From: Monocercomonoides exilis PA203 | Taxonomy: Eukaryota; Protista; Preaxostyla | Assembly: GCA_001643675.2 (NCBI GenBank) | Contig: LSRY02000003.1 | Location: 1,240,001-1,304,000 of the forward strand | DNA length: 64,000 nucleotides | Reading direction: 5' to 3' | Shown: positions 1 through 46,547 of the stretch, piece after piece | Layout of the letters: every line of letters starts with the position of its first letter | Numbering within the stretch: the stretch's first letter is position 1 | Made by a program: the position numbers and the translations under genes | Notes under the pieces: model-generated | What the model was told of the DNA's origin: nothing | Databases searched by the model: none | The model's input: the letters and a program-made list of their open reading frames with translations, nothing else

Positions 1-3000
1 TGAAAAGTGGAATTGACCACATTGACAGAAGTGGAACAGAAGGAGAAAGGAAAGTGAAAGTGAGGGATGAAGGGACAATTGAAGATTCTTATTCATTCAC
101 AGATGCACTTGTGATTGATGGATGTGTGAATGAGGGAGATGAAACCAAGCACAAGCCAATTCATTTTGAAGGTCCAATCAAAGGGAATTCTGCATCATCT
201 GTTATTTCATCAACTGCCTCACTCGACTTGTTATCTTTGAAGCTGCAGATTCCAAGTCAATTTGTACCAAGTATAAATACACTGATCTCATCGAGTGGAG
301 ATCTTCAACTCGAAAACTGTTTATTTGAGATCCGATCAACAGATATTATTCAATATTCGTTGATAACCACAACAACTGGAAGTTGCACATTGAAAGGATG
401 CAGTCTGACAGATTGTTCATTTGCCAAATCTCCATTGGTGATGGCTTCTTCTGTTTTGTTTGAAAACAGCAATTTTTCAAACATTGTGAACACTGGAAGC
501 GGTGAAGGAGGTCTTGCAACAGTGACATTAAAAAATGAGGAAGATTTGGTTATAATATCAACAAATGCATCATCTTGCTCACTTTCATCAAGCAATGGGA
601 AAGGAGGATTCTTGTATTTGGATTGTGAAAATTGTTTGAATGAAAATCCATTTATTTTTGATACTGGCGTAACATTTGAGAACAACAATGCAACTTTTGG
701 AAAGAATATGTTCATTTTGGCAAAAGATTTTAATACTTCTGTAACAAATATATCATTCAAATTTGAATATTCCTCAATGAAGGATGATAAAACTCTGTTT
801 GTTGGAAGTGATGACAAACATCAAGAAAAGGATTTATTCATGTTTCTGATTCCATACAGCTCATTTGAGATATTTATTTCATTGAACGGATTTGATGTCA
901 CGCGTTGTGGAAGTGAGGAAGAGCCATGCAAAACGATGTGGAAAGGGATGAAAAATATGAAAGAGGAGAATGGAAAGAAAACAATTCATATTGAAGAATC
1001 AACAATTATTCGAGATTCATTCAATGTTTCAAATTATCAGATCAAAAAGGATGCGAAGATGGGAGATGAAAATGCGAAAGCAACTTTGAATTTTGAAAAG
1101 GCAGTTGGAAGTCAACTGGATTATTTCATGGTGAATGATATTCATCTTGAATTGTCCAATATCCAATTTCAACTAACATCAGGATTTGACAACTCAGCCA
1201 AAACGATTATTTCCAGCAAAATTGGAGAATTGGTGATAAGTGAATGTTCATTCCATTCAGAAGCAGGAGCGAACAATGGATTTGATTGTGTATTTGTGGA
1301 TGTGATTGGAGGAACTGTGGAAGTGAATGATTTATCGATTGAATCATGCAATGTTGGAAACAGTATTTTTGCAATTAACAATGCTGTAGTTGTTTGCCAT
1401 TTAGTGAATGTTCGAGTGGAATCATTGAATGAAAGCGGCGAATGCCTTCTTCTGATCAAAGGAACTGAATCAACAACAAAGATAAATGAAGCAGACGAGA
1501 AAATGAGTCTCAAAATTGATAATTCATCATTTTCAGGGGTGAAAAGAAGTGATAATGGACCAAGCATTTTGGAGTCGAAAAGTGAGAAAAAGATTGATTT
1601 GGTTGTAAAGGAGAGCAACATTACAGAAGATAAGGCAGAAGAAAGTGAAAAAGGAGGAGCAATATTCTTCACTTTGGGTTCATCAGGATCAATGAAGATG
1701 ATTGGCTCAACAATCAGCCATTGCAGCTGCAGCAACAATACAGGAAGAGGAGGAGGAGTGTATTTGGCAACAAAGGAACGAGGAGAATTGAACTTCACAT
1801 TTGTGGGTATGAAATTCAGTTCAAACACAGCAAGAGTCGGGAATGATATTTTCATTGAATGCTTCAACATCACATCGCAGATCAATGAAACCCAATTCCA
1901 GTTTGATCTCCGAGAAGGCCATTACAATCGTTACAATGCGATATATGGAAGAGATGAGTGCAATTTTCCGGACGATACAGATCTGATTGAATTTGTGACG
2001 ATTCATCAGAGTGACACGATCATTGTGAGCAGTGTGAATGGAACGAATGAGAGACAATGCGGAACAAACACACTTCCATGTTATTCGATTGAGCATGGCC
2101 TGATTCATTTGACTTCGGAGCTGATTAGTCAAATACTCGTGATAGAAGAGAGTGTAATTGAAGAAGAGATAAATCTGGAGGAAATGAGTTTGAGCTCGAA
2201 AAGCAGAGGTTTGTGTGAAGTTGAAGTGAAAACAGGAATTGAAAAGACAAGAGAGACTTTGATAACAACAACAGGAACAGTTTCATTGGTGAGAGTGAAC
2301 TTTGTATTTGACTCAATTTTCATCTCTTCACATGAATCACTGATATTGCCAGAAGGAGGAATTCTTGAAATTATGAATTGTTCATTCACCTCAAAACAAT
2401 CAGCAGAAGAAGGAAATGAATATGCAAGCATTCCATTTCGTATTTTTAATATGGAAAAAGGAGAATTGCAACTTGATGGATGCACAGTATCAAATCTAAT
2501 TCTTCAAGAATCTGCATTTCATCTTTCTTCTCAACTTCCATCAGTGATTGATTCATTAACGATTTGCCATTCGACAATTTCAAAATCTCTGATAGATATT
2601 AATGAGTGCGGGCAATTAACAATTAAGGATTTCAATACAGAAAATATCACAGTTGAAGGAAAAGAAGAATCATTGATATCTTGCTTGTCAATGAAAAAGA
2701 CGATGCGATTAGCAAATTGCACAATGGGTGGAGTCTGTTCAAAGACTTCAAAAGGGAAATTGATGAAAGTGGAGGATTGCACAGAAGTGAAAATGGACAG
2801 TTGCATTTTTGATGGGAATTCAAATGAAAGAAATGAACAGAACATCAACGAAAATGAAGAGATGTGCAAATGGGATGGATCTCTTGTGGATGTTGTGAAG
2901 AGTTCTGTGATGATGAAAGACACAACAATATCGAATTCACCAGAAGGTGGAATAACAATGAGTGGAGGGGCATTGACTATTATTGATGGAAGATTTGAGA

Positions 3001-4892
3001 ACAATAATCCAACTATTGAAGGATATCCATCATTGAGAAGAAATATCATCTGTTCAGATGCAGGAACATTGAATGTTAGAAGTTTGAAAGGAGGAGATGG
3101 ATGGGAAAGAAATACATCGCTTTGGATGTTGAATGATGGGTGCAGTTTTGGAGGGATTGTTTCAGAGAGTGATTCATCGTTCTTCATTCCAGTTCTGGGG
3201 AGTGTGGAAGCAAAAGAAGAGACAGATAGAATGAAGCTGATATTCAAAGGAATGCTTCTTGTTCCATGCAATCTGTCATTCTCAATTGTGAAGAGAAAAG
3301 GAGAAGAGAAAGAGATTGAAAAACATGATTTTGATTCAAATGGATTTCTATCAGAAAGAGAAGTTGAAGGAAGTGTGGCAAAAGATCTGATCAATGGTTG
3401 TGGAAATGAAATGGAAATGAGTGTGCACATTTTGTTTGGGAATGCTGAATCTCCTTCATCAACAAATTCATTCATTCTGAAGAATTCAACTGTATCTGAT
3501 GGAGATGGAAACATTGCGAAAGGAAGAAATCTGACCAGTTCATTGTGGATAATAATAGTCATGGCAATCATTCTTTTTGTTGTTCTTATTGTTGTAGTTG
3601 TTCTGGCTGTTCGATGGAGGAAAGGAAAAGAAGAAATTAGGAAATACAAGGAGATTGTGAACGATAACATCAGAAAAGATCAGAAAGCATTTGAAATGGT
3701 GACGATGGAGATGTCGCCAAAGGAGCAGTGGAGGAGAGCAGAGAGCGAGGCAGAGAAGAAGAATGAAGAGAGGATAAAGAAGAGGGTGTATGAGACGAAT
3801 ATGGTGCATTCAGAGTCTGAACAGTATTTGCTGAGTGAGAGTGGATCGACTGAATACATTCTTGGACAAGACTCGGATAAAAATGGAGAATGGGAATTAG
3901 AGAAGGAAGAAGAGACACAAAAGCGAATTCCATCACCATCAGTTTCATCCACAGATACAGAAACCACATTTGTTCGAGGGGAGGATCTATTCCCAACAAC
4001 CTCATCGATGTCGAATCTGGTGGATGCAATGGCATGTTCATCGCCTTATGAAAAGCTGATTGTGGATTTGAGGGATTCGCTGTTCATGCTGCTTCATGGG
4101 AAGAATGAGAAGAAAGAGCTGGCGATTGGCACATTGAAGGAGAGAGAAGTGACGGGAACACAGATGCTGTTCTGGGTGGCGAATGGGGCTTTGCACTCGC
4201 TTGAAGATGAGGAAGACGAACTTCCCTCTTTGCGAGACCTGAGCCCGCACATTGTGCTTTTGTCAGAGCACATGGTGATCTGCATTGCGCTCCACTCCGA
4301 CTGCTCCTCTTCATCTGATGATTCGGATTCTTCCTCAATCACATCAACCACGATTGTGACATTTGCCAGTGTTGATGATGATGATGATGATGAAAGAGAT
4401 TCTCTGCCCTCATCAGCGTTTGAGGATGATGAGGATAAGTGGAAGGAGTGTTTGAGGTGGAAGGCGCCAGAGCTGGTGAAGAACAGGAAGATGGGAGCAA
4501 CAGAGAAGTCGGTGGCATTCTCGATTGGGATGATGCTGTGGGAGTGTGTGACACTCGAGATCCCGTTTGGAGAATACGAAGGGGAAGTGGCAGGGCAGAA
4601 GATTGCTGATGGAGAGAAGCCGAATGAGAGGGGAATTGAAGAGAGCGTGTTGAAGAATGTTGTTGATGCGTGTCTGTCATCAGAGGCATCGAAAAGACCA
4701 ACGCTCACTGAAGTGAAGAAAGAGCTGGTTGGGCTGTTTCCTGCTGGAACATTTGTTGTGTCGATGACAGATGCGATCATGCTTGAGGAAAGCAGTGAAG
4801 AGCAGGATGAAGAAAATGATGAAGGAAAAGAATGTGAAAAGGAAGGGGAAATGGAAGTGAATGAAATGAAAGACATGTTTGACAAGGAATGA
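1..4892 (+). CDS. Giant type-I membrane receptor-like protein (modular Cys/Gly-rich ectodomain, TM, degenerate TK/TKL-like pseudokinase); 5' truncated by the window edge
   Basis: Frame is open from base 3 (KSGIDHIDRSGTEGERKVK, colinear with the paralog at 22375-31482), so the GTG at 54 is not the start. Has CGxxxxPC modules, a TM helix (LWIIIVMAIILFVVLIVVVVLAV, ~3543-3611) and kinase C-lobe motifs LRWKAPE, SVAFSIGMMLWE, IPF, RPT. Confidence 0.85.
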   Translation, partial: KSGIDHIDRSGTEGERKVKVRDEGTIEDSYSFTDALVIDGCVNEGDETKHKPIHFEGPIKGNSASSVISSTASLDLLSLKLQIPSQFVPSINTLISSSGDLQLENCLFEIRSTDIIQYSLITTTTGSCTLKGCSLTDCSFAKSPLVMASSVLFENSNFSNIVNTGSGEGGLATVTLKNEEDLVIISTNASSCSLSSSNGKGGFLYLDCENCLNENPFIFDTGVTFENNNATFGKNMFILAKDFNTSVTNISFKFEYSSMKDDKTLFVGSDDKHQEKDLFMFLIPYSSFEIFISLNGFDVTRCGSEEEPCKTMWKGMKNMKEENGKKTIHIEESTIIRDSFNVSNYQIKKDAKMGDENAKATLNFEKAVGSQLDYFMVNDIHLELSNIQFQLTSGFDNSAKTIISSKIGELVISECSFHSEAGANNGFDCVFVDVIGGTVEVNDLSIESCNVGNSIFAINNAVVVCHLVNVRVESLNESGECLLLIKGTESTTKINEADEKMSLKIDNSSFSGVKRSDNGPSILESKSEKKIDLVVKESNITEDKAEESEKGGAIFFTLGSSGSMKMIGSTISHCSCSNNTGRGGGVYLATKERGELNFTFVGMKFSSNTARVGNDIFIECFNITSQINETQFQFDLREGHYNRYNAIYGRDECNFPDDTDLIEFVTIHQSDTIIVSSVNGTNERQCGTNTLPCYSIEHGLIHLTSELISQILVIEESVIEEEINLEEMSLSSKSRGLCEVEVKTGIEKTRETLITTTGTVSLVRVNFVFDSIFISSHESLILPEGGILEIMNCSFTSKQSAEEGNEYASIPFRIFNMEKGELQLDGCTVSNLILQESAFHLSSQLPSVIDSLTICHSTISKSLIDINECGQLTIKDFNTENITVEGKEESLISCLSMKKTMRLANCTMGGVCSKTSKGKLMKVEDCTEVKMDSCIFDGNSNERNEQNINENEEMCKWDGSLVDVVKSSVMMKDTTISNSPEGGITMSGGALTIIDGRFENNNPTIEGYPSLRRNIICSDAGTLNVRSLKGGDGWERNTSLWMLNDGCSFGGIVSESDSSFFIPVLGSVEAKEETDRMKLIFKGMLLVPCNLSFSIVKRKGEEKEIEKHDFDSNGFLSEREVEGSVAKDLINGCGNEMEMSVHILFGNAESPSSTNSFILKNSTVSDGDGNIAKGRNLTSSLWIIIVMAIILFVVLIVVVVLAVRWRKGKEEIRKYKEIVNDNIRKDQKAFEMVTMEMSPKEQWRRAESEAEKKNEERIKKRVYETNMVHSESEQYLLSESGSTEYILGQDSDKNGEWELEKEEETQKRIPSPSVSSTDTETTFVRGEDLFPTTSSMSNLVDAMACSSPYEKLIVDLRDSLFMLLHGKNEKKELAIGTLKEREVTGTQMLFWVANGALHSLEDEEDELPSLRDLSPHIVLLSEHMVICIALHSDCSSSSDDSDSSSITSTTIVTFASVDDDDDDERDSLPSSAFEDDEDKWKECLRWKAPELVKNRKMGATEKSVAFSIGMMLWECVTLEIPFGEYEGEVAGQKIADGEKPNERGIEESVLKNVVDACLSSEASKRPTLTEVKKELVGLFPAGTFVVSMTDAIMLEESSEEQDEENDEGKECEKEGEMEVNEMKDMFDKE

Positions 4893-5208
4893 GAGCTGAA
4901 AACAAAAGAAATTGTTTTCAAAACTGAATATGAAATGAGAGAGAAAGAAAATTATTTCGTCACTTTTGCATCAATTTTGATCAAAACTGAAATTCAAATC
5001 ATTGAGTTTTAAGATATGTGTGTTGACAGGACGTGGGCTTATGGAAAAGGTGAATTTTGAGATCGGAATGTTTTCAAGAGAGTTTCGTATGATTATATTA
5101 ATTTTCTTTAAAAGCTGAAAAATTGGAAAAAAAAAAAGGGAAATAAAGTTATCTTTTTGTTGAAATTTTTTAAAAAAATTAATTTATTTGACACACGAAT
5201 AATACACC

Positions 5209-5275
5209 AAAAATAATTCTAATTCCAAAAAAGAATAATTCTAATTCCAAAAAAGAATAATTCAAATTCGAAAAT
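5209..5275. repeat. Subterminal tandem repeat, 22-bp unit AATAATTCTAATTCCAAAAAAG (~3 copies)
   Basis: Directly visible; degenerate inverted counterparts lie at ~9575-9627. Confidence 0.85.
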
Positions 5276-5562
5276 TAAAAGTTCAATTTCGTAATTTATT
5301 AATTCGATTTTGAAAAGGGATAAATCTATTTCGAAATTGATTTTAAACAGAAAATGAAAATATAAACTGTTGATGGATTTCTGATAATTTCAAGTTATTT
5401 TTAAATCAATCAAATGTCATTACTCAAATGACTGTTTTTTTTAATTGAAACAATCAATAATTCTGTATTTTGAAGTTTATTTTTAAAAAAAAAAAAAAAA
5501 CAAAAATCATCACTCTGACGAAAAAAACATTTTAAAAAATTCATTCAATTGAATAACCATAT

Positions 5563-9266: not shown

Positions 9267-9627
9267 ATATAAAAATAATAATTTTTCAATCACATTTATT
9301 GAATAACAAAAAACAAGAATTTTTTCACAAACAATATTTTTAAGTCTCTTTGGTGAAAAAATAGAAAAACATCAATTTTTTGTACGAAAATGAATACATT
9401 TTCTTATTGAAAAACTTTTATTAAAGAAATACACATTCAAAATGAATGAAATTTTTATTAAGGAAATGCATCATTTTTTAAATATTCAAGAACAATGTGG
9501 GCTCACGAGATCAAAATCAAGAGTATTTTGACAGCAAAACATAAGTTAATAATTATACTAATCAAATAAATTTTCGTCTCGAAATCGAATTATTCTTTTT
9601 CGAAAATGAATTACTATTTTTCGAAAT

Positions 9628-10471: not shown

Positions 10472-10689
10472 ATATATAAATAATTCATGTTGCAATCATG
10501 ATAATATTATTTTTTTTCTTTAATAAGTGAATATTGAAAATGGAAAAACTGTTTGAAATATAAAAAAGAATATGAAATGAATACAGCAAATCAAAATTTT
10601 CAAACATAAAAGGTTAAACATCACTTTCAACGTGCATGATTGTTTTTATTCTTCGTCTGCTGAAATTTTCTGAAAAGTTTGAAACGTTT

Positions 10690-12999: not shown

Positions 13000-15900
13000 T
13001 TATCGATAATTTCCATTATTTCTTTGATATTTTTGATTCGAATATCGAGAATGTGGGGTGGATGCAGAATAAGATGGATGATAAGATGAATATTTTGTGT
13101 GTGCTGAAAAGGAAGAAGAAGAAGAAGATGATGATGATGATGAAGGAGAAGCAGATGAAGAAGAAATCAACGACGATGACGAATATGATGAAAGCAATGA
13201 TGTCGATGATGAAGCAGGGGTGCGTGAGGTGGATGCGCCAGAACGCAAAGAAGAAGAAGGAGAAAGAGAAGGAGAAAGAGATGATGACGATGAATATGAT
13301 TCTGGAATAGGCTTGTAAGTGCGAGAATTCCTTGAGCGAGCAGCATATGTTGTGCTTTCAGCAGTTGATGGCTTAAAAGAAGTAGTAGTAGTAGTAGAAG
13401 AAGAAGGAACTGCTGCTGAATTAGACTTATACGAACTGTAAAAATTAGAAGCCAACGAAGAATAAGTCCGCTGCGTTGGCTTGATTTCTTCTCTTTCTCG
13501 TTCTCTTCCTCTTCCTCTTCCTCGTTCATTTTCTTTGTATCGTTCATTCACTTCTCCCTGCATCGAACTTTGAGACGAAATGGAATTACGTTTTGGAAGC
13601 CTTTCGCTTCCAGATTGAAGAGATGAATAGCTTTGGGTCTCTTTATAAGAAGAGGAAGGATAATGAGAAGAAGGAAAAGAAGAAGGAGAAGGAGAAGAAG
13701 TTGATGATGATGCCGATGGTTGCGGTTGTGATTGTGGTGGTGGAAGTGGTGGTTGTGGCATTGAAGAGGGTAGAGAAGGCGAAGAAGCATCAGAAGAATC
13801 TCTCAAATATTCAGACGGGATTGGTGGAACACGCCGTGTTGGTTGCATTGATGAGGAGGAAGAGGAAGAAGAGGAGGAGGAGGAAGACGAGGAAGAGGAA
13901 GAGGAAGGAGAAGAAAAGATTAAAGGAATTGGAGGGAAAGAGGATCTATGAGAAAGGAAAGATGAAGATGGAGTAGCAAGAAGATAATATGAAGATGAAG
14001 ATTCCGATGAAGGAGGATAAGAAGAAGAGGAAGAGGAGGAAGAAGACGATGAAGAAGAGGGAGAGGAGGAAGAAGACGATGAAATAGAAGGTGTGTAACT
14101 GAAAGGAGAAGAGGATGAGCTTCCAGAAGTTCTTTGATTGGATGAGACAGATGCAGCAGCAGAAGAAGAAGGGGATGATGAATACGAAGAGGAGGAAGAG
14201 GAAGAGGATGAAGGATATGAGCCATTCGAGACATTCTGATGAGACTGCTGTTGACTTTGTTGATTTTGTTGATTTTGCTGCTGCAGAAGTTGCTGAGGAT
14301 GCGGCTGTGGCAATGCAGGCATTGGCAGCTGGGGCTCCTTGTGCATCAGCGCTGGCTGGGATGGCTTATAAGATTGGATTGAATGAGTTGACTGTGTTGA
14401 CTGTGCTGATTGTGCTGATTGTGTTGGCTGAGCAAGCTGTGTGGAATAAACAGACTGTGCTGTTCTCTGCTGGTGCATGGACTCGGTTTGAGTGGCATGT
14501 GGTGAGTATGAATGACTGCGAGGCTCATTCTGAGGCTGAATCTGCGGCTGTTGGTGGTATGGAGGTTGTGGGATGTATGCTCTGTTCTGGTCCTCAGTGC
14601 ATTTTGGTGAAGGAGAAGATGATGATGAAGAGGATGAACCATTCGAAGAAGCAGAGGCAGAGGCAGATGAAGGAATGTTTGGAACAGCAGGGAATGTGAT
14701 GTTTTGGCCATTGTGAGAAGAAGAGAAAGAAGAGAAAGAAGATGATGGAAGCAATGGAGATGACGATGCTGATGTAGGCTCAGCAGGCAAAGAATGAAAT
14801 ACCACATGTGCCGATGAAGATAAAGAGGAGGATGCTGAAGAAGAAGAAGAAGAAGAAGAAGAAGAAGAAGAAGAAGGAGGAGGAGGAGGAGGAGGAGTTG
14901 AAGAAGTAGTATTTGAGTTCATAGCAACAGCAGAAGAAGAACGCTGCGCATTGGTCACATTCGATACATTCGAATGGCTTGCATACGAAGAAGCCCCTTC
15001 AGTTAAAGTGTGGCCTTGTGTGTTTGCAGCGGGAGCAGAAGAGAAAGAAGTCGGCTTTGTCCAGTGAGGCGGGTTGCTCAGCACACTCGCGCTCTTCACA
15101 CGCTCTATCACCACTGCAATCCCATCTATCACAGACAGATGCCGCAGCGCTGAGGTTGCAAACGGATAAGCCGAAGAAGAAGAAGATGATGATGATGATG
15201 AAGACGGGTGAGAAGAGGAAGCTGTCATGTTCCCTATCATGTTGCCTCTTCCTCTCCCTCCTCTCATCAGCCTGTCTTCGCCTTCCTCTTTCTTCCTCGC
15301 ATAGTTTGCATACTCCTCCCTCGCCTTTGAGGCAAGCGCCAAGACAAGCTCTGCCTCCTCTTTGCTTCTGAACTCCACAAGAACATTCTTTCCCCTCTGG
15401 AACGTCTGCGCTGGCTTCACAGAACTGCCCTTTTCGATCGCTTCGTTCACTTTCTTCTCGTCCACACGCAGTATCGCATTGGAATAGCCATTGCGAGAAG
15501 ATGCCTGGTGATAGGAAGACGCATACGATGCAATGGAAGAAGAAGAAGAAGAAGAAGACGATGCCAATAAGGATGAATTTGATGGTGTGATTCCAGATGG
15601 ATGAGGTGGAGGTAGTGTCAGGTATCGGTCATATTGCACTGGCTTGACATACAAATACCTCAAAAGTTCAAGCTTTATTGCTGCTTCGGCATCAGGTGAA
15701 ACTGATGCTGCAACAGTGGTATTGTCAATAAGCGGTCCATTTGACGGTGCTTGCGCTCTTTTGAAGCTTTCTTCTTGTTCTCTGCTTCTTTCTCTTTCTC
15801 TTTCTCTTTCTCTCTCTCTCTCCTGTTCTCGCTCGTTGGCCTCTTCCATCTCTTCTCTTCTCCTTCGCTCCCATTCTCTTTCTCCTTCCTTCATAATCCG

Positions 15901-16728
15901 TTCCTGCTCTTCCCTTTCTTTGATTTCTCTGTCTTCCTTCTCCTTTCTCTCATCTTCCTCTGCCTTTCGCTCCATTTCCAGCTTCCTTTGGCGCTCTTCC
16001 TCTTCCCTCGCTTTCTCTTCGCGCTCCCGCTTCTCAACTTCAATCCTCCTCTCCAACTCTTCCAGTTCCCTTCGCTTCTGCTCAAGAACTGTTGCCTGAA
16101 GGCTTCCACCCAATGCAGAATCAAAGCCAGGCACAATTGTCTGAGGAATTTGAAGAGATCGCTGATCAACAGAAGCACCTGGAATAATTTGAGGCAAGTT
16201 CAATTGAGACGCTTGCATCATCTGAAGTAATGATGATTGCGTAGTCGAGGGAAATGATGGAGGAAAAATCTGTGTTCGTTGAGCAGGAGCTGGTAAAGTT
16301 CCAAATTGTGGAGATGATGGAACCAAAAGTTCAGGAGTCACAATCTCATTGTTCGAATAAACATGCAACATTTCACAGGAAACAAATAAGCGCTTTTTCT
16401 CGTCGGGCTTCTGTTCAAGGATAAAAACATGAGTGAAAGGAGATGCAGTTTCTGCGCCTGTTTCAATCCATCCGTCAATGGTCACAAGCGCAAAACGATC
16501 AAAACTCATCGATTTAGTGAACTGAAGAACAGTTTTTCTTTTTTGTTGCGCTTCATAAAAGGATTCGATCTCATCATGGCCTTCTAGAATTGAATCTTTA
16601 TCTTGAAAACGTTCAAAACGTACGGCATAATCCGCATAAAAGTTTGTTAATTCGGCTGGCTCTGTTTCAAGTAGCTTGTAAAACTGTGAAGCAAATCTTG
16701 GCCCTATTTTTTGCCCTGTAAGAGACAT
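13000..16728 (-). CDS. G3BP/Rasputin-like protein: NTF2 domain, charged coiled coil, split RRM with RGG, long Ser/Pro/Gln tail
   Basis: N-terminus IGPRFASQFYKLL..FY..GHDEI..FTHVFIL..LFVSCEMLH fits the NTF2 fold. RRM-like strands YLYVKPV, VLVEFRSKEEAELVL and GIAVVIERVK; RGGRGRG motif. Confidence 0.7.
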   Translation of the reverse strand: MSLTGQKIGPRFASQFYKLLETEPAELTNFYADYAVRFERFQDKDSILEGHDEIESFYEAQQKRKTVLQFTKSMSFDRFALVTIDGWIETGAETASPFTHVFILEQKPDEKKRLFVSCEMLHVYSNNEIVTPELLVPSSPQFGTLPAPAQRTQIFPPSFPSTTQSSLLQMMQASQLNLPQIIPGASVDQRSLQIPQTIVPGFDSALGGSLQATVLEQKRRELEELERRIEVEKREREEKAREEEERQRKLEMERKAEEDERKEKEDREIKEREEQERIMKEGEREWERRRREEMEEANEREQERERERERERERSREQEESFKRAQAPSNGPLIDNTTVAASVSPDAEAAIKLELLRYLYVKPVQYDRYLTLPPPHPSGITPSNSSLLASSSSSSSSSIASYASSYHQASSRNGYSNAILRVDEKKVNEAIEKGSSVKPAQTFQRGKNVLVEFRSKEEAELVLALASKAREEYANYARKKEEGEDRLMRGGRGRGNMIGNMTASSSHPSSSSSSSSSSSAYPFATSALRHLSVIDGIAVVIERVKSASVLSNPPHWTKPTSFSSAPAANTQGHTLTEGASSYASHSNVSNVTNAQRSSSAVAMNSNTTSSTPPPPPPPSSSSSSSSSSSSSASSSLSSSAHVVFHSLPAEPTSASSSPLLPSSSFSSFSSSHNGQNITFPAVPNIPSSASASASSNGSSSSSSSSPSPKCTEDQNRAYIPQPPYHQQPQIQPQNEPRSHSYSPHATQTESMHQQRTAQSVYSTQLAQPTQSAQSAQSTQSTHSIQSYKPSQPALMHKEPQLPMPALPQPHPQQLLQQQNQQNQQSQQQSHQNVSNGSYPSSSSSSSSSYSSSPSSSAAASVSSNQRTSGSSSSSPFSYTPSISSSSSSSPSSSSSSSSSSSSSYPPSSESSSSYYLLATPSSSFLSHRSSFPPIPLIFSSPSSSSSSSSSSSSSSSSSSSMQPTRRVPPIPSEYLRDSSDASSPSLPSSMPQPPLPPPQSQPQPSASSSTSSPSPSSFPSSHYPSSSYKETQSYSSLQSGSERLPKRNSISSQSSMQGEVNERYKENERGRGRGREREREEIKPTQRTYSSLASNFYSSYKSNSAAVPSSSTTTTTSFKPSTAESTTYAARSRNSRTYKPIPESYSSSSSLSPSLSPSSSLRSGASTSRTPASSSTSLLSSYSSSSLISSSSASPSSSSSSSSSSSFSAHTKYSSYHPSYSASTPHSRYSNQKYQRNNGNYR

Positions 16729-21875: not shown

Positions 21876-22374
21876 AGTTTTGAACGTAAAAAAAACATTT
21901 TTAAAATAAAAATTTGTATTTTTTAATGTTTTTTTTTCTAATTTAAAAATTTATTATTATTATTATTATAATTATTATTATTTTTGTGAGAATAACATTC
22001 TTTTTCAAGGTTGTTTTATTGTTTTCGAATTCTTCAACCCACCATAAAAAAAAACAATTTTCTTTGCTGGATAAAAATATAATTTTCTCATTTCCTTTTT
22101 CATGTTTGAATATGATTTGTTCTAATTTGAATATTAAATTTTTTTAAAAAATGCTTTTAAATACTCATCAATACAAAACATCTCAAACCAACATTTAAAA
22201 TTCAAATCTCAAAATTCTCATTATCCAAAAAATCTTATCATATTCTCACACTCATCTCAAAGCCCAACAAAGAAAATTTCAGTTTTGATCAAGATAGATT
22301 CAAGAATGTTAATAACAATTTCTTTCTCTCTCATTTCATATTCAGTTTTGAAACTTATTTCTTGTTTTCGAATC

Positions 22375-25300
22375 TCATCCATTGCCAAACATGTCTTTCA
22401 TTTCATTCACTTCAATTTCCCCTTCCTTTTCGCTTTCCTTGCTCTCTCCGCCTTCATCCTGCTCCTCACTGCTTTCCTCAAGCATGATCGCATCTGTCAT
22501 CGTCACAACAAATGTCCCAGAAGGAAATAACCCAACCAGCTCTTTCTTCACTTCTGTGAGTGTTGGTCTTTTCGATGCCTCTGATGACAGACACGCATCA
22601 ACAACATTCTTCAACACGCTCTCTTCAATCCCTCTCTCATCCGGCTTCTCTCCATCAGCAATCTTCTGCCCTGCCACTTCCCCTTCGTATTCTCCAAACG
22701 GGATCTCGAGTGTCACACACTCCCACAGCATCATCCCAATCGAGAATGCCACCGACTTCTCTGTTGCTCCCATCTTCCTGTTCTTCACCAGCTCTGGCGC
22801 CTTCCACCTCAAACACTCCTTCCACTTATCCTCATCATCCTCAAATGCTGATGAGGGCAGAGAATCTCTTTCATCATCATCATCAACACTGGCAGATGTC
22901 ACGATCGTGGTTGATGTGATTGAGGATGAATCCGAATCATCAGATGACGAGGAGCAGTCGGAGTGGAGCGCAATGCAGATCACCATGTGCTCCGAGAACA
23001 GCACAATGTGCGGACTCAGCTCTCGCAAAGAGGGAAGTTCGTCTTCCTCATCTTCAAGCGAGTGCAACGCTCCATTCGCCACCCAGAACAGCATCTGTGC
23101 TCCCGTCACTTCTCTCTCCTTCAATGTGCCAATCGCCAGCTCTTTCTTCTCACTCCTCCCATGCAACAACATGAACAGCGAATCCCTCAAATCCACAATC
23201 AGCTTTTCATAAGGCGATGAACATGCCATTGCATCCACCAGATTCGACATCGATGAGGTTGTTGGACACAGATCCTCCCCTCGAACAAATGTGGTTTCTG
23301 TATCTGTTGATGAGATTGATGGTGATGGAATTTGCTTTTGTGTCTCTTCTTCCTTCTCTAATTCCCATTCTCCATTTTTATCTGAGTCTTGTCCAAGAAT
23401 GTATTCCGTTGATCCATTCTCAGCCAAAAGATATTCCGAAGACTCAGAATGATGCATTTTCTTTTCATATTCTCTCTTCTTTGTCCTCTCTTCATTCTTC
23501 TTCTCTGCCTCCCTCTCTACTCTCCTCCACTGTTCCTCAGGCGACATCTCCATCGTCACCATCTCAAATGCCTTCGGATCCTTTCTGATGTTATCATTCA
23601 CAATCTCTCTCAGATCTTCTGCTTCATTCTTGACCTTTCTCCATCGAACAGCCAAAACAACAATTATTGTCAGCAAAATTATAAATATGAAGCATGCAAT
23701 CACAATAACAATCCACCACGACTTCTTCTCATTTCCTCCTTCAACAATCCTTTCATCATCTTTTGGAGGAGTAATGCTCGCATTTTTCAGAATGAATGAA
23801 TTTGTTGAAGAAGGAGATTCTTCATTTCCAAACAAAACAGAAACACTCACCTCAACATCATTTCCACAACTGCTGATCAGATATTTTGCCACACTTCCTT
23901 CTGCTTCTCTTTCTGATAGAAATCCATTTGAATCAAAATCATGTTTTTCAATCTCTTTCTCTTCTCCCTTCCTCTTTACAATTGAGAATGACAGATTGCA
24001 TGGAACAAGAAGCAATCCTTTGAATATCAGTTTCATTCTGTCTGACTCTCCTTTTGCTTCAACACTGTCCAACACAGGAATGAATAATGATGAATCACTC
24101 TCTGAAACAATCCCTCCAAAACTGCACCCATCATTCAACATCCAAAGCGATGTATTTCTTTCCCATCCATCTCCTCCTTTCAAACTTCTAACATTCAATG
24201 TTCCTGCATCTGAACAGATGATATTTCTTCTCAATGATGGATATCCTTCAATAGTTGGATTATTGTTCTCAAATCTTCCATCAATAATAGTCAATGCCCC
24301 TCCACTCATTGTTATTCCACCCTCTGGTGTATTCGATATTGTTGTATCTTTCATCATCACAGAACTCCTCACAACATCAACAAGAGAACCATCCCATCTG
24401 CACATCTCTTCTTCAATATTCAACTGCTTCTCATTTCTTTCCTTTGAACTCCCATCAAAAATGCAGCTGTCCATTATCACATCTGTGCAATCCTCCACTT
24501 TCATCAATTTCCCTTTTGAAGTCTTTGAACTGACTCCACCCATTGTGCAATTTGTCAATTGCATCGTCTTTTTCATTGACAAGCAAGATATCAGTGATTC
24601 TCCATTTCCTTCAACTGTGATATTTTCTGTATTGAAATCCTTGATTGTTAATTGCCCGCATTCATTAATATCAATCAGAGAAGTTTTAATTGTAGAATTG
24701 CAAATTGATAATAAATAAATCACTGATGGAAGTTGAGAAGAAAGATGAAATGCAGATTCTTGAAGAATGAGATTTGATATTGTGCATCCATCAAGTTGTA
24801 ATTCTCCCTTTGCCACATTTATTATGTGAAATGGAATGACTGCTAATTCTTCATTAACTCCTTCTGTCAATTGTTTTGAACTGAATGAGCAATTCATTAT
24901 CTCAAGGATTCCTCCTTCTGGCAATATCAGTGATTCATGTGAAGAGATGAAAATTGAATCAAATACAAAATTCACTCTCAACAATGACACAGTTCCTGTT
25001 GTTGTTATCAAAGTCTCTCTCGTTCTTTCAATTCCTGATTTCACTTCAACTTCACAATTTTCCCTGCTCTTTGAACTCAAACTCATTTCCTTCAGATTTA
25101 TCTCTTCCCCAATCACACTCTCTTCAATCACAATCATTTGACTCATGAAATCTGAGGTCAAATGAATCAGGCCATGCTCAATCGAATAACATGGAAGTGT
25201 GTTTGTTCCGCATTGTCTCTCATTCGATCCATTCACACTGCTCACAACAATTGTGTCACTCTGATGAATCGTCACAAATCCAATTAGGTCTGTATCATCT

Positions 25301-28300
25301 TTGTTATCACACTCATCTCTTCCAAATATTGCATTACTGCGATTGTATTTCCCTTCTCGAAGATCAAATCGAAATTGGCTTTCATTGATCTGAGATGTGA
25401 TGTTGAAGCATTCAATGAAAATATCATTCCCGACTCTTGCTGTGTTTGAACTGAATTTCATACCCACAAATGTGAAGTTCAATTCTCCTCTTTCCTTTGT
25501 TGCCAAATACACTCCTCCTCCTCTTCCTGTATTGTTGCTGCAGCTGCAATGGCTGATTGTTGAGCCAATCATCTTCATTGATCCTGAAGCACCCAATGTG
25601 AATAATATTGCTCCTCCTTTTTCACTTGTTTCTGCTTTGTCTTCTGTGATGTTGCTCTCCTTTACAACCAAACAAATCTTTTTGTCACTCTTCGATTCCA
25701 AAATGCTTGCTCCATTGTCACTTCTCTTCACTTCTGAAAATGATGAATTATCAATATTGAGATTCATTTCCTCACCCACTTCATTTATCTTTGTTGTTAT
25801 TTCAGTTCCTTTGATCAGAAGAAGGCATCCGCCGCTTTCATTCAATGATTCCACTCGAACATTCACAAAATGGCAAGAAACTCCAGAATCATGATTGACA
25901 AAAATACTATTTCCAACATTGCATGATTCAATTGACAAATCGTTCACATCCACACTGCCTCCAATCGCATCCACAAACACACAATCAAATCCATTGTTCA
26001 CTCCTGCTTCTGAATAGAATGAACATCCACTTATCACCAAATCTCCATTTATATTTGAAATAATTGATTTGGCTGAGTTGTTAAATCCCGATTCCAGTTG
26101 CAGTTGGATATTCATCAATTCAAGATGTTCGTCATTTCCCATGAAATAATCCAGTTGACTTCCAACTGCCTTTTCAAAATTCAAAGTTGCTTTCGCATTT
26201 TCATCTCCCATCTTTACACTCTTTTTGATCTGATAATTGGACATGCTGAATGAATCTTGAATAATTGTTGATCCTTCAACCTGAATTGTTTTATTTCCAA
26301 TCTCCTTTTCCATATTTTTCATCCCTTTCCACATCGTTTTGCATGGCTCTTCCTCACTTCCACATCTTGCAACATCAAATCCTTCTGATGAGATAAATAT
26401 CTCAATTGAGCTGTATGGAATCAGAAACATGAACAAATCTTTGCTTGAATGAAAATCATCACTTCCAACAAACAGAGTTTCATCATCCTTCATTGATGAG
26501 TAATCAAACTTAAACGCATCGTTTGTTACAGAAGAATTAAAATCCTTTCCCAAAATAAACACATTCTTTCCATTGGCTGCTTTGTTGTTTGCAAACAAAA
26601 CGTTTTCCAAAAGAAATGGCTTCTCATTCAAACAATTTTGGCAATCCAGATGCAAGAATCCTCCTTTTCCATTCCCTGTTGAAAGCGAACAAGAAGATGC
26701 ATTTGGTGATTTCATCACCAAATCTTCTTCATTTATTAATGTAACTCTTGCAACACCTCCTTCTCCACTTCCAGTGTTCACAATGTTTGAAAAGTTGCTG
26801 TTTTCAAACAAAACAGAAGAAGCCATCGCCAAGGGAGATTTGGCAAATGAACAATCTGCCAAACTGCATCCTTTCAATGTGCAACTTCCACTGGTTGTGG
26901 TTATCCATGAGAATTGAATAATATCTGTTGATCGGATCTCAAATAAACAGTTTTCGAGTTGAAGATCTCCACTCGATGAGATCAGTGTATTTATACTTGG
27001 TACAAATTGACTTGGAATCTGCAACTTCAAAGATAATAAGCCTAGTGAAGCAGTTGATGAAATCACAGCTGTCGCAGAATCTCCATTTATTGTCTCTTTA
27101 AACTGAACAGGCCTGCGTTTGATGGCATCTTCCTCACTCACACACCCATCAATCGCAAGTGCATCTGTGAATGAATAAACATGTTCAATTGTACCTTCAT
27201 CTTTCACTTTCACTTTCCTTTCTCCATCTGTTCCACTTCTGTCAATGTGGTCAATTCCACTTTTCATTGATTGACATGGGAATATTTCACTTCCACATCC
27301 CAATGTGTCATGACCACCAGTCGACACAGACACAACCACCCACTTCAAAGAAACAAGAAATATTCGAAGATCCATTTCTCCATATTTTCCATCTTTCCCA
27401 ACATATGCATTCTCATCATTAGAATATCCCGAGTAATCAAATGCAAAACGCTCTATTTTTACACTGTTCACCAGACTGCCGCTCTTCACAAACATGTTCT
27501 TCCCAACTGTTGCACTGCATCCAGAAAACGATATCGATGACAGTTGAAATCCTCCTTCATTCAGACTGCAATCCAGATGTATCCCTCCCCCTTTTCCTCC
27601 CTCACTCTTATTCTCACAAACACATCCAGTAAATGAACTCTCTTGAATTGTAATATATCCTCCTTCGCTCAACAATATTTTCAGTGCTCCTCCTTCTTTG
27701 CTCTTTTCTGATAAAGCCCCGTTAATTGTACTTCCATTCATAACCATTCCAACTCCCACACTCCCTCCAAATACTGTTGCCTCTTCACCTCCATCAATCT
27801 CCAATCTTTGCAGTGTGCAATTTAATAGTTTCACTTTGTATTCCTGATCATTCACATTTGCTGATGAAAGTGAAAATGAAAACAACGAAACTGTTGATTT
27901 CACATCTGAAATCGTGACAAAGTCTAATTCAACCATCTTCCCTGTTGATTTGATCAAGAAAAACCCAATTGTGTTTCCCTTCCCTCCAATCACACTCATC
28001 TTACTGTTCTTCATGTTGAGCTCACCGTTTTGAGTGCTCGATTCGATCACCGATAAGATTGCTCTGTTTAAACTTGATGGAACAACAATCCCAATGAACT
28101 CCATTTCTGTCAACATTGTTGATTTCAGAATGCATTCTTCAGATCCACTCACTTCTGTTAGGCATTCAATTTCCACAATTGTCTCAGTTTTTGCCTTCAT
28201 ACACATTCCTCCCACATCTGCACACCCAGTAATATTAGATTTTTCACACACAACAATCTCCTCTTTAACATTCAGTGTTCTTTTCAAACGCCCCATCCCA

Positions 28301-31300
28301 TAATTAACATTCTTACAAGGTGCTTTCTCCAGTCCACAATACACCTCTTCCACTCCGGATGTGCCATCTACAAATATTGTATCATCAAAGAAACCATCGA
28401 AGAATATAAACAAATCGATATTCCAATCACCGAATGCTTCTGTTCTATCATGTCCAACAACCGAGTTGTCTTTCTGAGTGATGCTTGTCATGAAGGTGAA
28501 CAAGGGCTCTTTCACAGAAGCGACAAATGACTCACACACAAAATACATATCTCTTCCGACACTCGCTTTGTTGGCTGAAAACACAATATTGGTTATGGAA
28601 AAGGTTGTGGATGACACTTGTGAGCCATGGTTGAACTCGATCATGAGAGCACCGCCTCTTCCTCCAGAACTTGTATCCTCGCTCACAGAGCAGGTGGAGA
28701 AGATGGTGTCACTCACCGAAAACGAGTTGGCAGGGGCAGATGAGGCGAATGAGATGCACCCGCCATTGGTGGGAGTCTGTTGGCTCAACTGTTCTGAGTT
28801 GATGTTGGTGATGGTGCAGTTGGCGAGGGAGAGGGAGAGGGCAGGGGAGGTGGCAGAGGAGAGGACACAGCTGGTGGGGGTGGCTGTGGAGGTGATGTGG
28901 GTGATGTTGGAGGAGTTGAGGGTGAGGGGGTTTGTGAGGAAGGCGAGGTGGAAGATGCTTTGGCTGTTGAGGGCGAGTTGGGTGATTGCTGTGTGGTTGA
29001 GGGCGAGGGAGCCAGCAGTGAGGAAGAAGAGGGGGGTTGTGATTGATGATGAAGATGGGGTTGTTCCGGTGATGGTGGTTGTGTTGAGATTGAGGGAAGG
29101 GGAGTTATCAGAGAGGTGGAAGAGGATGGGGGTGATTTGGTTTGTGGAGTTGTGGGCGATGGCGAGGGCAGAGACTGTAAGGGAGCCCTGGGTCTGTTGG
29201 AAGAGGGCAGACGAGGCAGATGGATCTGGTGAAGAAGATGTTGATAATGATGACAAGGATGAAAGAGATGATGTTGATTGCGATGACTGTGAATGTGAGT
29301 TTTGTGGTTGAGGAATGCCACTGGAGGCGATGGTGGTGGCATCTGTGCCGTTTCCGGTGATTTTAGTGTCAACAGCGCTGAAAGTAAGTGTTTGAGTTGG
29401 AACAAATGTTGAGGTGAGGAGGGTGAGGGAGGCGTCTTGGAGGAGGGAAATGAAGCCGGTGAGGGCATACTCGATGGTGGCACATGGGGTCTGTTGGGGT
29501 CTGCCACAGGCATCAGCATCACTTCCACTGTTGGCAACGATTTTGTTCTGGGCGATGAGTGGGAGCCAGCCATTGTACTCAGTGTTATCAGCTGTATTGT
29601 TATTCCACACTCTTTGTGTTGGGGTTGTTGAACCACAATTCTCGAATGGGGATTGTGTGATGCTATTTCCGTAAAAGAACACATCATTTCCCCTGCCATT
29701 TGCAGCAGTATTACTATCGAAGAAGCAGAAAGTGATGAATTTGAACCCGCTCATCCAGAAATATGTGTGTCTGAAAAACATTGCAGCACCTCCCCATGAT
29801 GTTGATGAACTTGTCAATTTGTTATTTATAAACTGACAATCATCAATCAAAAATTGATTTGGCTTGTTATTCGGAGGAGAATTGAATGTAAGAGAACCAG
29901 CAGAATCACCACCTGAATTGGCAATGCACTTGCATTTGGAAAACAGGAATTGAGCACTTGTTGGTGTACTTCCCATGTTAAAATACCAACCAGTTCCACA
30001 CCAATTTGTTATTGAACAACTTTCCACTCTGTTATCTGAGAACGTCCAAACAGAATTTGATTGTGGATTCCTTGCGTGAACTGCTCCTCCATGGGCAGCT
30101 GAACAGCTTGTGAAATTGGATTTTGTGATGTCAATTTTTAACAAACTATTGCAATGTAACGCTCCACCATGATCACTTGCCGAACATTTGTTGAATGAAC
30201 AAGAAGTGATTGTGAGATTTGCATTCAAGCAAGCAACATAAAGTGCTCCGCCCCATTCACTTTCGCTTTTTGAATTATTCCATTCACACCATTTGAAGAT
30301 ATAGCTATTCAAATCAGTAAAGGACAATCGAGTTAAATTCTCTCTGTGAGTTTCATTTCCAATATATTCAACGGGATCATTTGATGAAGAGCGTGTTTGG
30401 TGGAGGAAAGAGGCATTGAAGGCAGAGAGAGAAGTGGATGGGCTGTTGAGGTTGGGGAGAATGGCTCCATCAATGGGGTTGTGAGTGTGTTTGAAGATGG
30501 ATGAGTGAATGGAGATGGATGAGTGAAGGGAGAAGGAGGGGATTGAATTGGTGTTGGTGTTGGTGGAAGAGAGAGAAGAGGAAGAGGTGGTTGAGGTGAA
30601 TGGGTTGAGCGAGTGAGAGGGAAGGGATGGAAGAGATGGATGGGATTGGGGAGATGAGATGTTGGAGAAGAGGGTGTTTGAGAGATGGAGATTGAGGTGG
30701 ATTTGGAGGTGGGGATGGGATTGGTGATGGTTATGGAGAGGGGAAGGGGAAGAGAAAGAGGAAATCGAAGGGGAAATAGAAGGAGAAGGGGAAGTGGAAG
30801 AAGATGATGAGGATGAGGATGAGAAAGATGAAGGAGAAGGGGAAAGGGAAGGAGATGGAGAAGGGGAAGGGGAAGAGAGGGAAGAAGGAGAAAAAAGGAA
30901 ATGCTGGATGAGGGAGATGAATGAGGAGAAGAAGGAGTGGGAGATGGAGAAGGAGGCAGGGATTGGGGAGTGGGCATGTGAGAGGAGATTGTTTGGGGTG
31001 GAGAAGAGGGGGAAGGAGAGGATGGCAGGTTGGCGGGTGGTGAGGGAGAAGTTTGTGAGGGCGAGGGAGGCATGGGCAGAGAGGAAGAGGGGGCAGTGGT
31101 GGTGGTGGTTGTTGTTGGTGAGGGAAGGTGGGTGGATGGTGCAAGTGGAGGAGCAGATGGAGGCAGTGGAGTGATGTTGGGCAGTGAGGAGCGGACAGCC
31201 ACTGAGAGGGATGATGTTGAGATGGGTCACACACAAGGAGGTGTTGATGATATTTAGACTTGTTTGAATGCTGCAAATGTGATTGTCAGCTGGTTTTATT

Positions 31301-31482
31301 ACTTTCTTCAATGAATTGCAAAAATTATAGTTGTTATCTCTATTTTTATCTGCAATGCTGATCTTGCCTTCCTGCATCTCCTCGTTCCATTTTTGATGAT
31401 ATTGCGTTTCTTCAATGTTTTTGCCATAACTGCAGTTTTCAACAATTAATAGCAACGCAACAATATTGAATGCAGCTCTCAT
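22375..31482 (-). CDS. Full-length giant receptor-like pseudokinase (~3035 aa), paralog of 1-4892
   Basis: Single intronless ORF. Likely start at the second Met (MRAAFNIVALLLIVENCSYG, signal-like); the ORF track starts it at 31551. GGA(L/V) beta-helix-like motifs, five CGxxxx(x)PC modules, TM WWIVIVIACFIFIILLTIIVVLAV, kinase C-lobe remnant. Confidence 0.9.
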   Translation of the reverse strand: MRAAFNIVALLLIVENCSYGKNIEETQYHQKWNEEMQEGKISIADKNRDNNYNFCNSLKKVIKPADNHICSIQTSLNIINTSLCVTHLNIIPLSGCPLLTAQHHSTASICSSTCTIHPPSLTNNNHHHHCPLFLSAHASLALTNFSLTTRQPAILSFPLFSTPNNLLSHAHSPIPASFSISHSFFSSFISLIQHFLFSPSSLSSPSPSPSPSLSPSPSSFSSSSSSSSSTSPSPSISPSISSFSSPSPLHNHHQSHPHLQIHLNLHLSNTLFSNISSPQSHPSLPSLPSHSLNPFTSTTSSSSLSSTNTNTNSIPSFSLHSSISIHSSIFKHTHNPIDGAILPNLNSPSTSLSAFNASFLHQTRSSSNDPVEYIGNETHRENLTRLSFTDLNSYIFKWCEWNNSKSESEWGGALYVACLNANLTITSCSFNKCSASDHGGALHCNSLLKIDITKSNFTSCSAAHGGAVHARNPQSNSVWTFSDNRVESCSITNWCGTGWYFNMGSTPTSAQFLFSKCKCIANSGGDSAGSLTFNSPPNNKPNQFLIDDCQFINNKLTSSSTSWGGAAMFFRHTYFWMSGFKFITFCFFDSNTAANGRGNDVFFYGNSITQSPFENCGSTTPTQRVWNNNTADNTEYNGWLPLIAQNKIVANSGSDADACGRPQQTPCATIEYALTGFISLLQDASLTLLTSTFVPTQTLTFSAVDTKITGNGTDATTIASSGIPQPQNSHSQSSQSTSSLSSLSSLSTSSSPDPSASSALFQQTQGSLTVSALAIAHNSTNQITPILFHLSDNSPSLNLNTTTITGTTPSSSSITTPLFFLTAGSLALNHTAITQLALNSQSIFHLAFLTNPLTLNSSNITHITSTATPTSCVLSSATSPALSLSLANCTITNINSEQLSQQTPTNGGCISFASSAPANSFSVSDTIFSTCSVSEDTSSGGRGGALMIEFNHGSQVSSTTFSITNIVFSANKASVGRDMYFVCESFVASVKEPLFTFMTSITQKDNSVVGHDRTEAFGDWNIDLFIFFDGFFDDTIFVDGTSGVEEVYCGLEKAPCKNVNYGMGRLKRTLNVKEEIVVCEKSNITGCADVGGMCMKAKTETIVEIECLTEVSGSEECILKSTMLTEMEFIGIVVPSSLNRAILSVIESSTQNGELNMKNSKMSVIGGKGNTIGFFLIKSTGKMVELDFVTISDVKSTVSLFSFSLSSANVNDQEYKVKLLNCTLQRLEIDGGEEATVFGGSVGVGMVMNGSTINGALSEKSKEGGALKILLSEGGYITIQESSFTGCVCENKSEGGKGGGIHLDCSLNEGGFQLSSISFSGCSATVGKNMFVKSGSLVNSVKIERFAFDYSGYSNDENAYVGKDGKYGEMDLRIFLVSLKWVVVSVSTGGHDTLGCGSEIFPCQSMKSGIDHIDRSGTDGERKVKVKDEGTIEHVYSFTDALAIDGCVSEEDAIKRRPVQFKETINGDSATAVISSTASLGLLSLKLQIPSQFVPSINTLISSSGDLQLENCLFEIRSTDIIQFSWITTTSGSCTLKGCSLADCSFAKSPLAMASSVLFENSNFSNIVNTGSGEGGVARVTLINEEDLVMKSPNASSCSLSTGNGKGGFLHLDCQNCLNEKPFLLENVLFANNKAANGKNVFILGKDFNSSVTNDAFKFDYSSMKDDETLFVGSDDFHSSKDLFMFLIPYSSIEIFISSEGFDVARCGSEEEPCKTMWKGMKNMEKEIGNKTIQVEGSTIIQDSFSMSNYQIKKSVKMGDENAKATLNFEKAVGSQLDYFMGNDEHLELMNIQLQLESGFNNSAKSIISNINGDLVISGCSFYSEAGVNNGFDCVFVDAIGGSVDVNDLSIESCNVGNSIFVNHDSGVSCHFVNVRVESLNESGGCLLLIKGTEITTKINEVGEEMNLNIDNSSFSEVKRSDNGASILESKSDKKICLVVKESNITEDKAETSEKGGAILFTLGASGSMKMIGSTISHCSCSNNTGRGGGVYLATKERGELNFTFVGMKFSSNTARVGNDIFIECFNITSQINESQFRFDLREGKYNRSNAIFGRDECDNKDDTDLIGFVTIHQSDTIVVSSVNGSNERQCGTNTLPCYSIEHGLIHLTSDFMSQMIVIEESVIGEEINLKEMSLSSKSRENCEVEVKSGIERTRETLITTTGTVSLLRVNFVFDSIFISSHESLILPEGGILEIMNCSFSSKQLTEGVNEELAVIPFHIINVAKGELQLDGCTISNLILQESAFHLSSQLPSVIYLLSICNSTIKTSLIDINECGQLTIKDFNTENITVEGNGESLISCLSMKKTMQLTNCTMGGVSSKTSKGKLMKVEDCTDVIMDSCIFDGSSKERNEKQLNIEEEMCRWDGSLVDVVRSSVMMKDTTISNTPEGGITMSGGALTIIDGRFENNNPTIEGYPSLRRNIICSDAGTLNVRSLKGGDGWERNTSLWMLNDGCSFGGIVSESDSSLFIPVLDSVEAKGESDRMKLIFKGLLLVPCNLSFSIVKRKGEEKEIEKHDFDSNGFLSEREAEGSVAKYLISSCGNDVEVSVSVLFGNEESPSSTNSFILKNASITPPKDDERIVEGGNEKKSWWIVIVIACFIFIILLTIIVVLAVRWRKVKNEAEDLREIVNDNIRKDPKAFEMVTMEMSPEEQWRRVEREAEKKNEERTKKREYEKKMHHSESSEYLLAENGSTEYILGQDSDKNGEWELEKEEETQKQIPSPSISSTDTETTFVRGEDLCPTTSSMSNLVDAMACSSPYEKLIVDLRDSLFMLLHGRSEKKELAIGTLKEREVTGAQMLFWVANGALHSLEDEEDELPSLRELSPHIVLFSEHMVICIALHSDCSSSSDDSDSSSITSTTIVTSASVDDDDERDSLPSSAFEDDEDKWKECLRWKAPELVKNRKMGATEKSVAFSIGMMLWECVTLEIPFGEYEGEVAGQKIADGEKPDERGIEESVLKNVVDACLSSEASKRPTLTEVKKELVGLFPSGTFVVTMTDAIMLEESSEEQDEGGESKESEKEGEIEVNEMKDMFGNG

Positions 31483-35881: not shown

Positions 35882-46547
<10,666 letters not shown>

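Follow-up and report, generated by a model that had tools for sequence, protein, structure and literature searches.

The window analysed here is a 64,000-nucleotide stretch of the genome of Monocercomonoides exilis PA203 (contig LSRY02000003.1, forward strand), taken from the Oxford Nanopore Technologies (ONT) assembly (PMC8767320) and corresponding to C25:1240001-1304000, where C25 is the contig of the window. It holds the end of one and the whole of another very large gene, here called A and B, which are members of a very large intronless M. exilis family of ~3050-amino-acid (aa) type I membrane proteins. Coordinates given without a contig name are positions in the window. A scan for open reading frames (ORFs) placed the two genes as follows:

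1..4892 (+): gene A, last 1630 codons
31551..22375 (-): gene B, uninterrupted 3058-codon ORF

With the upstream 10 kb joined to the window, the full ORF of gene A was found to be 3047 codons long, starting at C25:1235752, 4248 bp upstream of the window, with no interruption. The stop codons of A (+, 4892) and B (-, 22375) lie tail-to-tail with 17,482 bp between them, and the original prediction for this stretch, of two intronless paralogs converging 17.5 kb apart, was thus borne out. That prediction covered only the last 1630 codons of A, and the end coordinate that it gave, 31482, is that of Met24 of gene B, which heads the signal-peptide-like segment MRAAFNIVALLLIVENCSYG. Its description of the genes as "paired" holds for the tail-to-tail layout and not for any special pair status, as A and B are for the most part not mutual closest relatives and are separated by other genes.

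Patchwork identity between genes A and B

A 1-4994 aligned to B 27266-22275 with 88.7% identity over 5017 columns (blastn). Identical and highly diverged segments within and beside this alignment were:

A 244-354 (+), B 27023-26913 (-): exact A=B tract, 111 bp (global P = 0.003 in the GENECONV-like test described below)
A 1683-1876 (+), B 25587-25394 (-): A=B tract, 194 bp, one mismatch
A 2946-3178 (+), B 24321-24089 (-): exact A=B tract, 233 bp, where the family mean identity is only 0.83
A 4419-4622 (204 bp) and 4635-4702 (+), B 22845-22562 (-): exact A=B tracts in the kinase-like C-lobe
A 3490..3650 (+): hypervariable juxtamembrane/transmembrane (TM) segment, TM helix 3543-3617, 57% identical to B
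A 4893..5080 (+), B ~22374..22190 (-): conserved 3′ flank, from alignment

The first three of these tracts had already been picked out in the original prediction, as had the segment at 3490-3650, described there as essentially unalignable, and two diverged tracts which we measured at 78% (600-830) and 86% (940-1250) identity; all of them were recovered. It had missed the exact 204-bp run at 4419-4622, the run at 4635-4702 and more runs in the first 4.25 kb of A, before the window begins.

Exact runs of 233, 204, 141, 137 and 111 bp were observed between A and B. When the 1162 differences were placed uniformly in 2000 trials, the longest run had a mean of 56 bp and a maximum of 119 bp. The divergence of A and B at synonymous sites (pS) ranged from 0 to 0.64 across 50-codon windows, with an overall dS of 0.28 and dN of 0.09, and this heterogeneity (chi-square 251.6, df 58, P = 6e-26) was reached in none of 2000 codon permutations. 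Synonymous divergence is therefore not uniform along the gene.

Homology had been said to continue for ~120 bp into the 3′ flank, which is close to what we measured: 84% identity between A and B over 100 bp by BLAST, and ~190 conserved columns in an alignment of 5 paralogs. This conserved flank of A is probably a 3′ untranslated region. The 5′ flanks of A and B had nothing in common upstream of the ATG. Homology between paralogs is limited to the stretch from the ATG to ~100-190 bp past the stop, as would be expected from RNA-mediated duplication or if conversion were restricted to the transcribed unit.

Exchange of tracts among paralogs

The genome searched comprised 82.3 Mb in 101 contigs. 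Our DNA search scored 32 paralogs of 1343 candidates, and 13 of the 30 which were retrieved lie on C25. The family alignment contained 16 paralogs and covered their last 5-6.5 kb only; the comparison over full length was made for A, B and a third gene, C. In the 16-paralog alignment the nearest relative of A or B was found to switch every 100-500 bp, with shared tracts being 99-100% identical where the family mean identity is ~0.82. The third gene and the matches to other copies were:

C25:1.312 Mb: gene C (the L002 gene), third full-length paralog, just past the window
361-568, 642-809 and 1276-1491 (+): A = C, 100% identical, unlike B (global P = 0.000 for 361-568)
557-731 (+): A 99% identical to L004 (C25:1.142 Mb) and L006 (C25:1.195 Mb)
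2148-2278 and 2315-2486 (+): A matches L005 (C25:0.855 Mb, in-frame stop), 99% at 2315-2486
23567..23866 (-): juxtamembrane/TM variant of B, TM helix 23718..23644, 93-99% identical to L013, ~83% elsewhere

L013 is MONOS_3800 at C25:0.485 Mb; to judge from its match to B's version, the juxtamembrane/TM stretch that had seemed unalignable has been exchanged as well. When A, B and C were compared along their whole 9.2 kb, each pair was 88-89% identical and the closest pair alternated, leaving no stable sister pair: gene C, 45-72 kb off, exchanges as much with A and B as A does with B.

Tests for recombination agreed with this pattern. A pairwise homoplasy index (PHI)-type test gave z = -4.1 (0 of 500 permutations), and 56% of informative site pairs failed the four-gamete test. 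In a GENECONV-like test, for which polymorphic sites were permuted and the maximum was taken over all 120 pairs of the 16 paralogs, 65 zero-mismatch tracts passed the global 5% threshold (68-337 bp, median ~120 bp), 31 of them involving A or B. Trees built from segments were incongruent: A and C were identical rows in one segment set, A grouped with B at 99% support in another (A+C rejected, p-AU [approximately unbiased test] 0.002), and A grouped with L005 at 97% support in a third. Partners were mostly linked, as 36 of the 37 near-identical 120-bp windows (at least 118 of 120 positions) have their partner on C25. Damaged copies took part too: the same frameshift, near A residue 1270, is present in L004 and L006 (L004:1050-1074, L006:1050-1074) and L005 has an in-frame stop (L005:~4628; W to stop in NASL*MLNDGC), and all three share identical tracts with intact genes.

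The changing partners, significant tracts and incongruent segment trees uphold the original claim that segmental gene conversion in a large family makes mosaic genes. Since A and B are inverted, with unique flanks and interleaved short tracts, the exchange is therefore of the non-crossover kind.

Selection along the protein

We compared dN/dS between regions of the protein in a region-level test. Medians were 0.30-0.34 for the ectodomain and 0.34 for the juxtamembrane/TM segment, with 0.11 for the coil and acidic part and 0.25 for the C-lobe; across regions they ranged from 0.11 to 0.46, and none of the 120 ectodomain pairs exceeded 1. Purifying selection is present in every region. Positive selection as the source of the diverged tracts was ruled out by these values below 1 and by the fact that the diverged tracts match third copies.

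Protein architecture and the kinase-like tail

The part before the TM helix consists, in order, of a signal-peptide-like start, a Ser/Pro-rich stretch and about five or six modules which each open with a "CG-x5-PC" cap (motif at residues 682, 1072, 1419, 1730 and 2114). The conserved hydrophobic leader, MRAAFNIVALLLIVENCSYG, occupies codons 24-43 and was recognised by its hydrophobicity. There is a single TM helix (residues 2608-2640 in B), with only one hydrophobic 19-mer scoring above 1.8. Together the leader, the one TM helix and the large N-terminal ectodomain give a predicted receptor-like, type I single-pass topology, and the proteins may act as adhesins or receptor scaffolds.

The tail is 420 aa long and is made up of a charged helix, an acidic/Ser-rich linker and a remnant of a kinase C-lobe:

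A 4431..4727 (+), B 22833..22537 (-): kinase-homology C-lobe, Pfam PF07714 positions 161-258 only

This match scores 36.8-38.2 bits against a cutoff of 23.1 and covers the C-terminal 98 of the 258 model positions. Among 52 tails, HRD, HxDxxxxN and VAIK-type motifs were each found in 0, DFG-type motifs in 2, a Gly loop in 2 and APE in all 52. Because HRD, HxDxxxxN and VAIK are absent from every one of them, the tails are classed by their motifs as pseudokinases or C-lobe remnants, which is in line with the earlier description of these genes as receptor-like pseudokinases. The best sequence matches of the tail in the PDB are the pseudokinases MLKL and ILK (catalytically inactive relatives of the TKL group; E ~1e-5), followed by Roco4 and TAK1, in the region from APE to the end. 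Unlike MLKL and ILK, which have a complete bilobal fold, the tails have no N-lobe detectable by sequence.

A fold search with a low-confidence AlphaFold2 (AF2) model of an ectodomain module returned right-handed parallel beta-helices for 50 of the 50 matches listed, with Z up to 12. The top match was EtpA (Z 12.0, root-mean-square deviation 3.5 Å over 172 residues), with pectate lyases and tailspikes next in rank, and ESM Atlas gave DUF1565, Chlam_PMP and Beta_helix as leads, all sub-0.9. The modules may thus fold as a right-handed beta-helix, a prediction of low confidence. In this predicted fold they resemble beta-helix adhesins and Pmp-like proteins (EtpA, autotransporter passengers, Chlamydia Pmp, DUF1565). 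The bacterial proteins are secreted or sit in the outer membrane, whereas those described here come from a eukaryote and are type I membrane proteins that end in a kinase-like tail.

Size of the family and the published record

A profile search with the tail scored 102 of 1434 candidates. All 102 scored have full-length tails, and most lie in open frames of 2000-4200 codons dispersed over many contigs. The invariant motif TTSSMSNLVDA, when back-translated, had 876 matches in the genome (432 forward and 444 reverse), while the reversed control had 0. Many of these matches form convergent pairs 3.8-5.3 kb apart (e.g. C1:75544+/80870- and C7:453544+/457324-), which suggests tight tail-to-tail palindromes or transposon arms elsewhere in the genome. 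If most copies are full length, a family of ~880 copies could take up as much as ~8 Mb, or one tenth of the genome.

In 95 members the identity of the ectodomain showed no correlation with that of the tail (Spearman -0.07), and the family therefore recombines as a network. The juxtamembrane/TM segment was the most variable part, with a mean identity of 0.60 and a unimodal distribution among 95 family proteins. Discrete juxtamembrane/TM cassettes were ruled out by this unimodal distribution.

All 120 relatives listed in protein databases are M. exilis MONOS_* proteins, some of which are named "putative Protein tyrosine and serine/threonine kinase". "Tyrosine kinases" are the largest gene family described in M. 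exilis, with 332 predicted members (Karnkowska et al. 2019, PMC6759080), and the family overlaps "unclassified repeats" (Karnkowska et al. 2019, PMC6759080; Treitli et al. 2021, PMC8767320). The count of tail motifs is ~2.6 times the annotated family count. Genes A and B belong to this same published "protein tyrosine kinase / TKL" family (PMC6759080, PMC8767320), which those papers treat as kinases, whereas none of the 52 tails studied here keeps the catalytic motifs. We found no mention of gene conversion, pseudokinases or an ectodomain for this family in PMC6759080, PMC8767320 or the other papers searched.

Gene models and neighbouring genes

The annotated models are 2089 aa for A (P0001), 2057 aa for B (P0003, 28548..22378 only) and 2040 aa for C (P0002), and they leave out ~1000 N-terminal codons of the open frames (window 28549-31551 (-) in B, and the 4.25-kb upstream part in A). 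All three look N-terminally truncated, because homology between the paralogs starts at the ATG of the ORF and the sole signal-peptide-like segment lies there. The left-out part of B has a composition of its own: at 28000-31551 (the first ~1000 codons, rich in Ser, Pro, Thr and His) the coding strand is C-rich and the plus-strand GC skew is +0.2 to +0.47, while 22375-28000 is G/A-rich with a skew of about -0.3. Genes A and B span 9.2 kb each without introns; the M. exilis genome has on average ~0.8 introns per kb of coding sequence (PMC6759080).

Other features of the window are:

13000-16728 (-): NTF2-domain ORF, 1242 aa
18508-19425 (-): papain-family cysteine protease, an ordinary gene between A and B
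37597-46547 (+): CFAP74-like ciliary protein, in two separate ORFs through either an intron or a frameshift
53480-54820 (+): SUN-domain ORF

The genes between A and B (NTF2-domain protein and papain-type protease) are thus ordinary ones. An origin of A and B by palindromic duplication was ruled out by their unrelated flanks and by these intervening genes. No receptor-derived pieces were seen outside the genes when A was compared to the 10-kb region of B by blastn.

Discussion

We consider it highly probable that the mosaics arise by interlocus gene conversion of the non-crossover type, in a huge family whose members are type I receptor-like pseudokinases with predicted beta-helix ectodomains. 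M. exilis is reported to lack non-homologous end joining (NHEJ) and to have a comparatively complete homologous-recombination pathway (PMC6759080). We infer that a break in one copy would be repaired by homologous recombination from a paralog, usually on the same chromosome, and that repeated short non-crossover interlocus (ectopic) conversion would turn each gene into a mosaic of its neighbours, broken copies included. With hundreds of templates that are 80-90% identical and no NHEJ, ectopic repair would yield short non-crossover tracts, preferably between linked genes. The process is ordinary gene conversion of a known kind and no demonstrated antigen-switching system; conversion homogenises and reshuffles the family alike, and nothing indicates that it is programmed.

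Several points weigh against this reading. The 30 paralogs were sampled for their likeness to A, so that the bias towards linked partners looks larger than it is, and the permutation tests assume exchangeable sites. The tree segments were picked post hoc, after seeing the data, and so it is the GENECONV-like permutation test which serves as the a priori test. Five close copies share the region at 4481-4630, part of whose similarity may come from local conservation in their subclade. The agreement between two protein sets, discussed below, is for partner paralogs of A and B. Surface location and cleavage of the signal peptide are deduced from the sequence. The structural models are also poor: that of the tail (52-row family alignment) has a predicted local distance difference test score (pLDDT) of 37.5 and is unusable, that of a 730-aa piece of the ectodomain has a mean pLDDT of 44 and is usable only for residues ~130-300, and the beta-helix call depends on a stretch of 170-230 residues at pLDDT 65-80. 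No Pfam or NCBIfam family matched the ectodomain at E ≤ 0.1, and PF02415, PF07602 and PF13229 were not matched.

Conversion could instead be used, or selected, for a variable surface-receptor repertoire with clonally variable expression, like that of Giardia VSP, Plasmodium var or trypanosome VSG, which we think unlikely. M. exilis is a gut-dwelling protist, the family is very large by its 876 tail motifs and its mosaicism is pervasive, but dN/dS lies between 0.11 and 0.46 everywhere, with no ectodomain pair above 1. The uncoupled relationships of ectodomain and tail in the 95 members are in favour of such a system; the unimodal identity of the juxtamembrane/TM segment is not, nor are the tracts in the cytoplasmic tail, a part in which diversity would serve no obvious purpose in recognition. 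The broken copies L004, L005 and L006 share tracts with intact genes as VSG-type pseudogene donors do, yet most of the copies scored are intact giant ORFs dispersed among housekeeping genes, rather than a silent archive feeding an expression site. Neither an expression site nor a silent archive was evident, the copies seen being chromosome-internal among housekeeping genes (proximity to telomeres was not checked genome-wide). The analogy with variant surface protein families drawn in the original prediction is not supported, on three counts, namely dN/dS below 1 in all regions, the lack of discrete cassettes and the lack of an archive/expression-site layout. A related idea, that the ~880 copies form a combinatorial repertoire for recognising gut bacteria or host glycans, in which obligatory homologous repair keeps reshuffling beta-helix modules, juxtamembrane segments and scaffold tails between intact and broken copies and different subsets are expressed by individual cells or clones, is a speculation to which we give little credence.

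False identical tracts could also have been produced if Canu correction, Nanopolish or the ten rounds of Pilon blended reads from paralogs, which we regard as very improbable. The assembly paper does state that multi-copy regions were polished less well, some with secondary short-read alignments only (PMC8767320). Against blending, the tracts match one specific and changing partner rather than the family consensus, ORFs of 3000 codons stay open through all of the junctions, and 300-bp MiSeq reads should place uniquely between paralogs that are 10-20% apart. Ten paralogs (L004, L006-L011, L015, L016 and L018) have the same protein sequence in the NCBI set, made from ONT contigs, and in EukProt, and significant tracts link pairs of this kind (L004-L006, L009-L018 and L004-L007). 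We tentatively take the EukProt set to be the older 454-based models, from the pattern of IDs; new IDs above 17000 and fused "fu" models have no EukProt source. That there was no exchange at all, the identical tracts reflecting strong constraint or a low mutation rate and the diverged ones relaxed constraint, is scarcely credible. Several close copies are indeed alike in some regions, for example in the kinase C-lobe at 4481-4630, but the tracts are identical at synonymous sites in columns in which other members differ by ~17%, A matches a third copy at 100% in places where it diverges from B, tree topology shifts between segments with high support, and four-gamete incompatibility stands at 56%.

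Interlocus (ectopic) gene conversion is well known from multigene families, including Plasmodium var, Giardia VSP and the concerted evolution of tandem or dispersed paralogs. The present family resembles these in its short identity tracts, changing partners, heterogeneous dS, incongruent phylogenies and preference for linked copies. Unlike in var- or VSP-type families, here the whole gene including the cytoplasmic tail exchanges, purifying selection acts throughout, and the copies seen show neither subtelomeric clustering nor an expression site, nor any evidence of being expressed exclusively. The transmembrane kinases (TMKs) of Entamoeba histolytica, another anaerobic gut protist, form a large single-pass receptor-like family with a cytoplasmic kinase-homology domain, and are similar as a type of family by general description, as are other expansions of receptor-like kinases or pseudokinases in protists. 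In contrast to the Cys-rich CXXC repeats of the TMKs, the M. exilis proteins have predicted beta-helix modules, a tail with the C-lobe only and a length of ~3000 aa.

The mosaics of A and B do not establish a new kind of diversification system; what they add is a fresh instance of a known process, in a family that is very large and so far poorly described. The analysis corrects what has been said of the family, the largest in this model amitochondriate eukaryote: at least in the subfamily studied here, its members are giant receptor-like pseudokinases and not kinases. In M. exilis, a eukaryote in which NHEJ is reported to be absent, the family also offers a tractable case for the study of ectopic homologous repair. 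Its genes evolve as a recombining network, and therefore gene trees, orthology calls and repeat annotation will mislead unless recombination is modelled.

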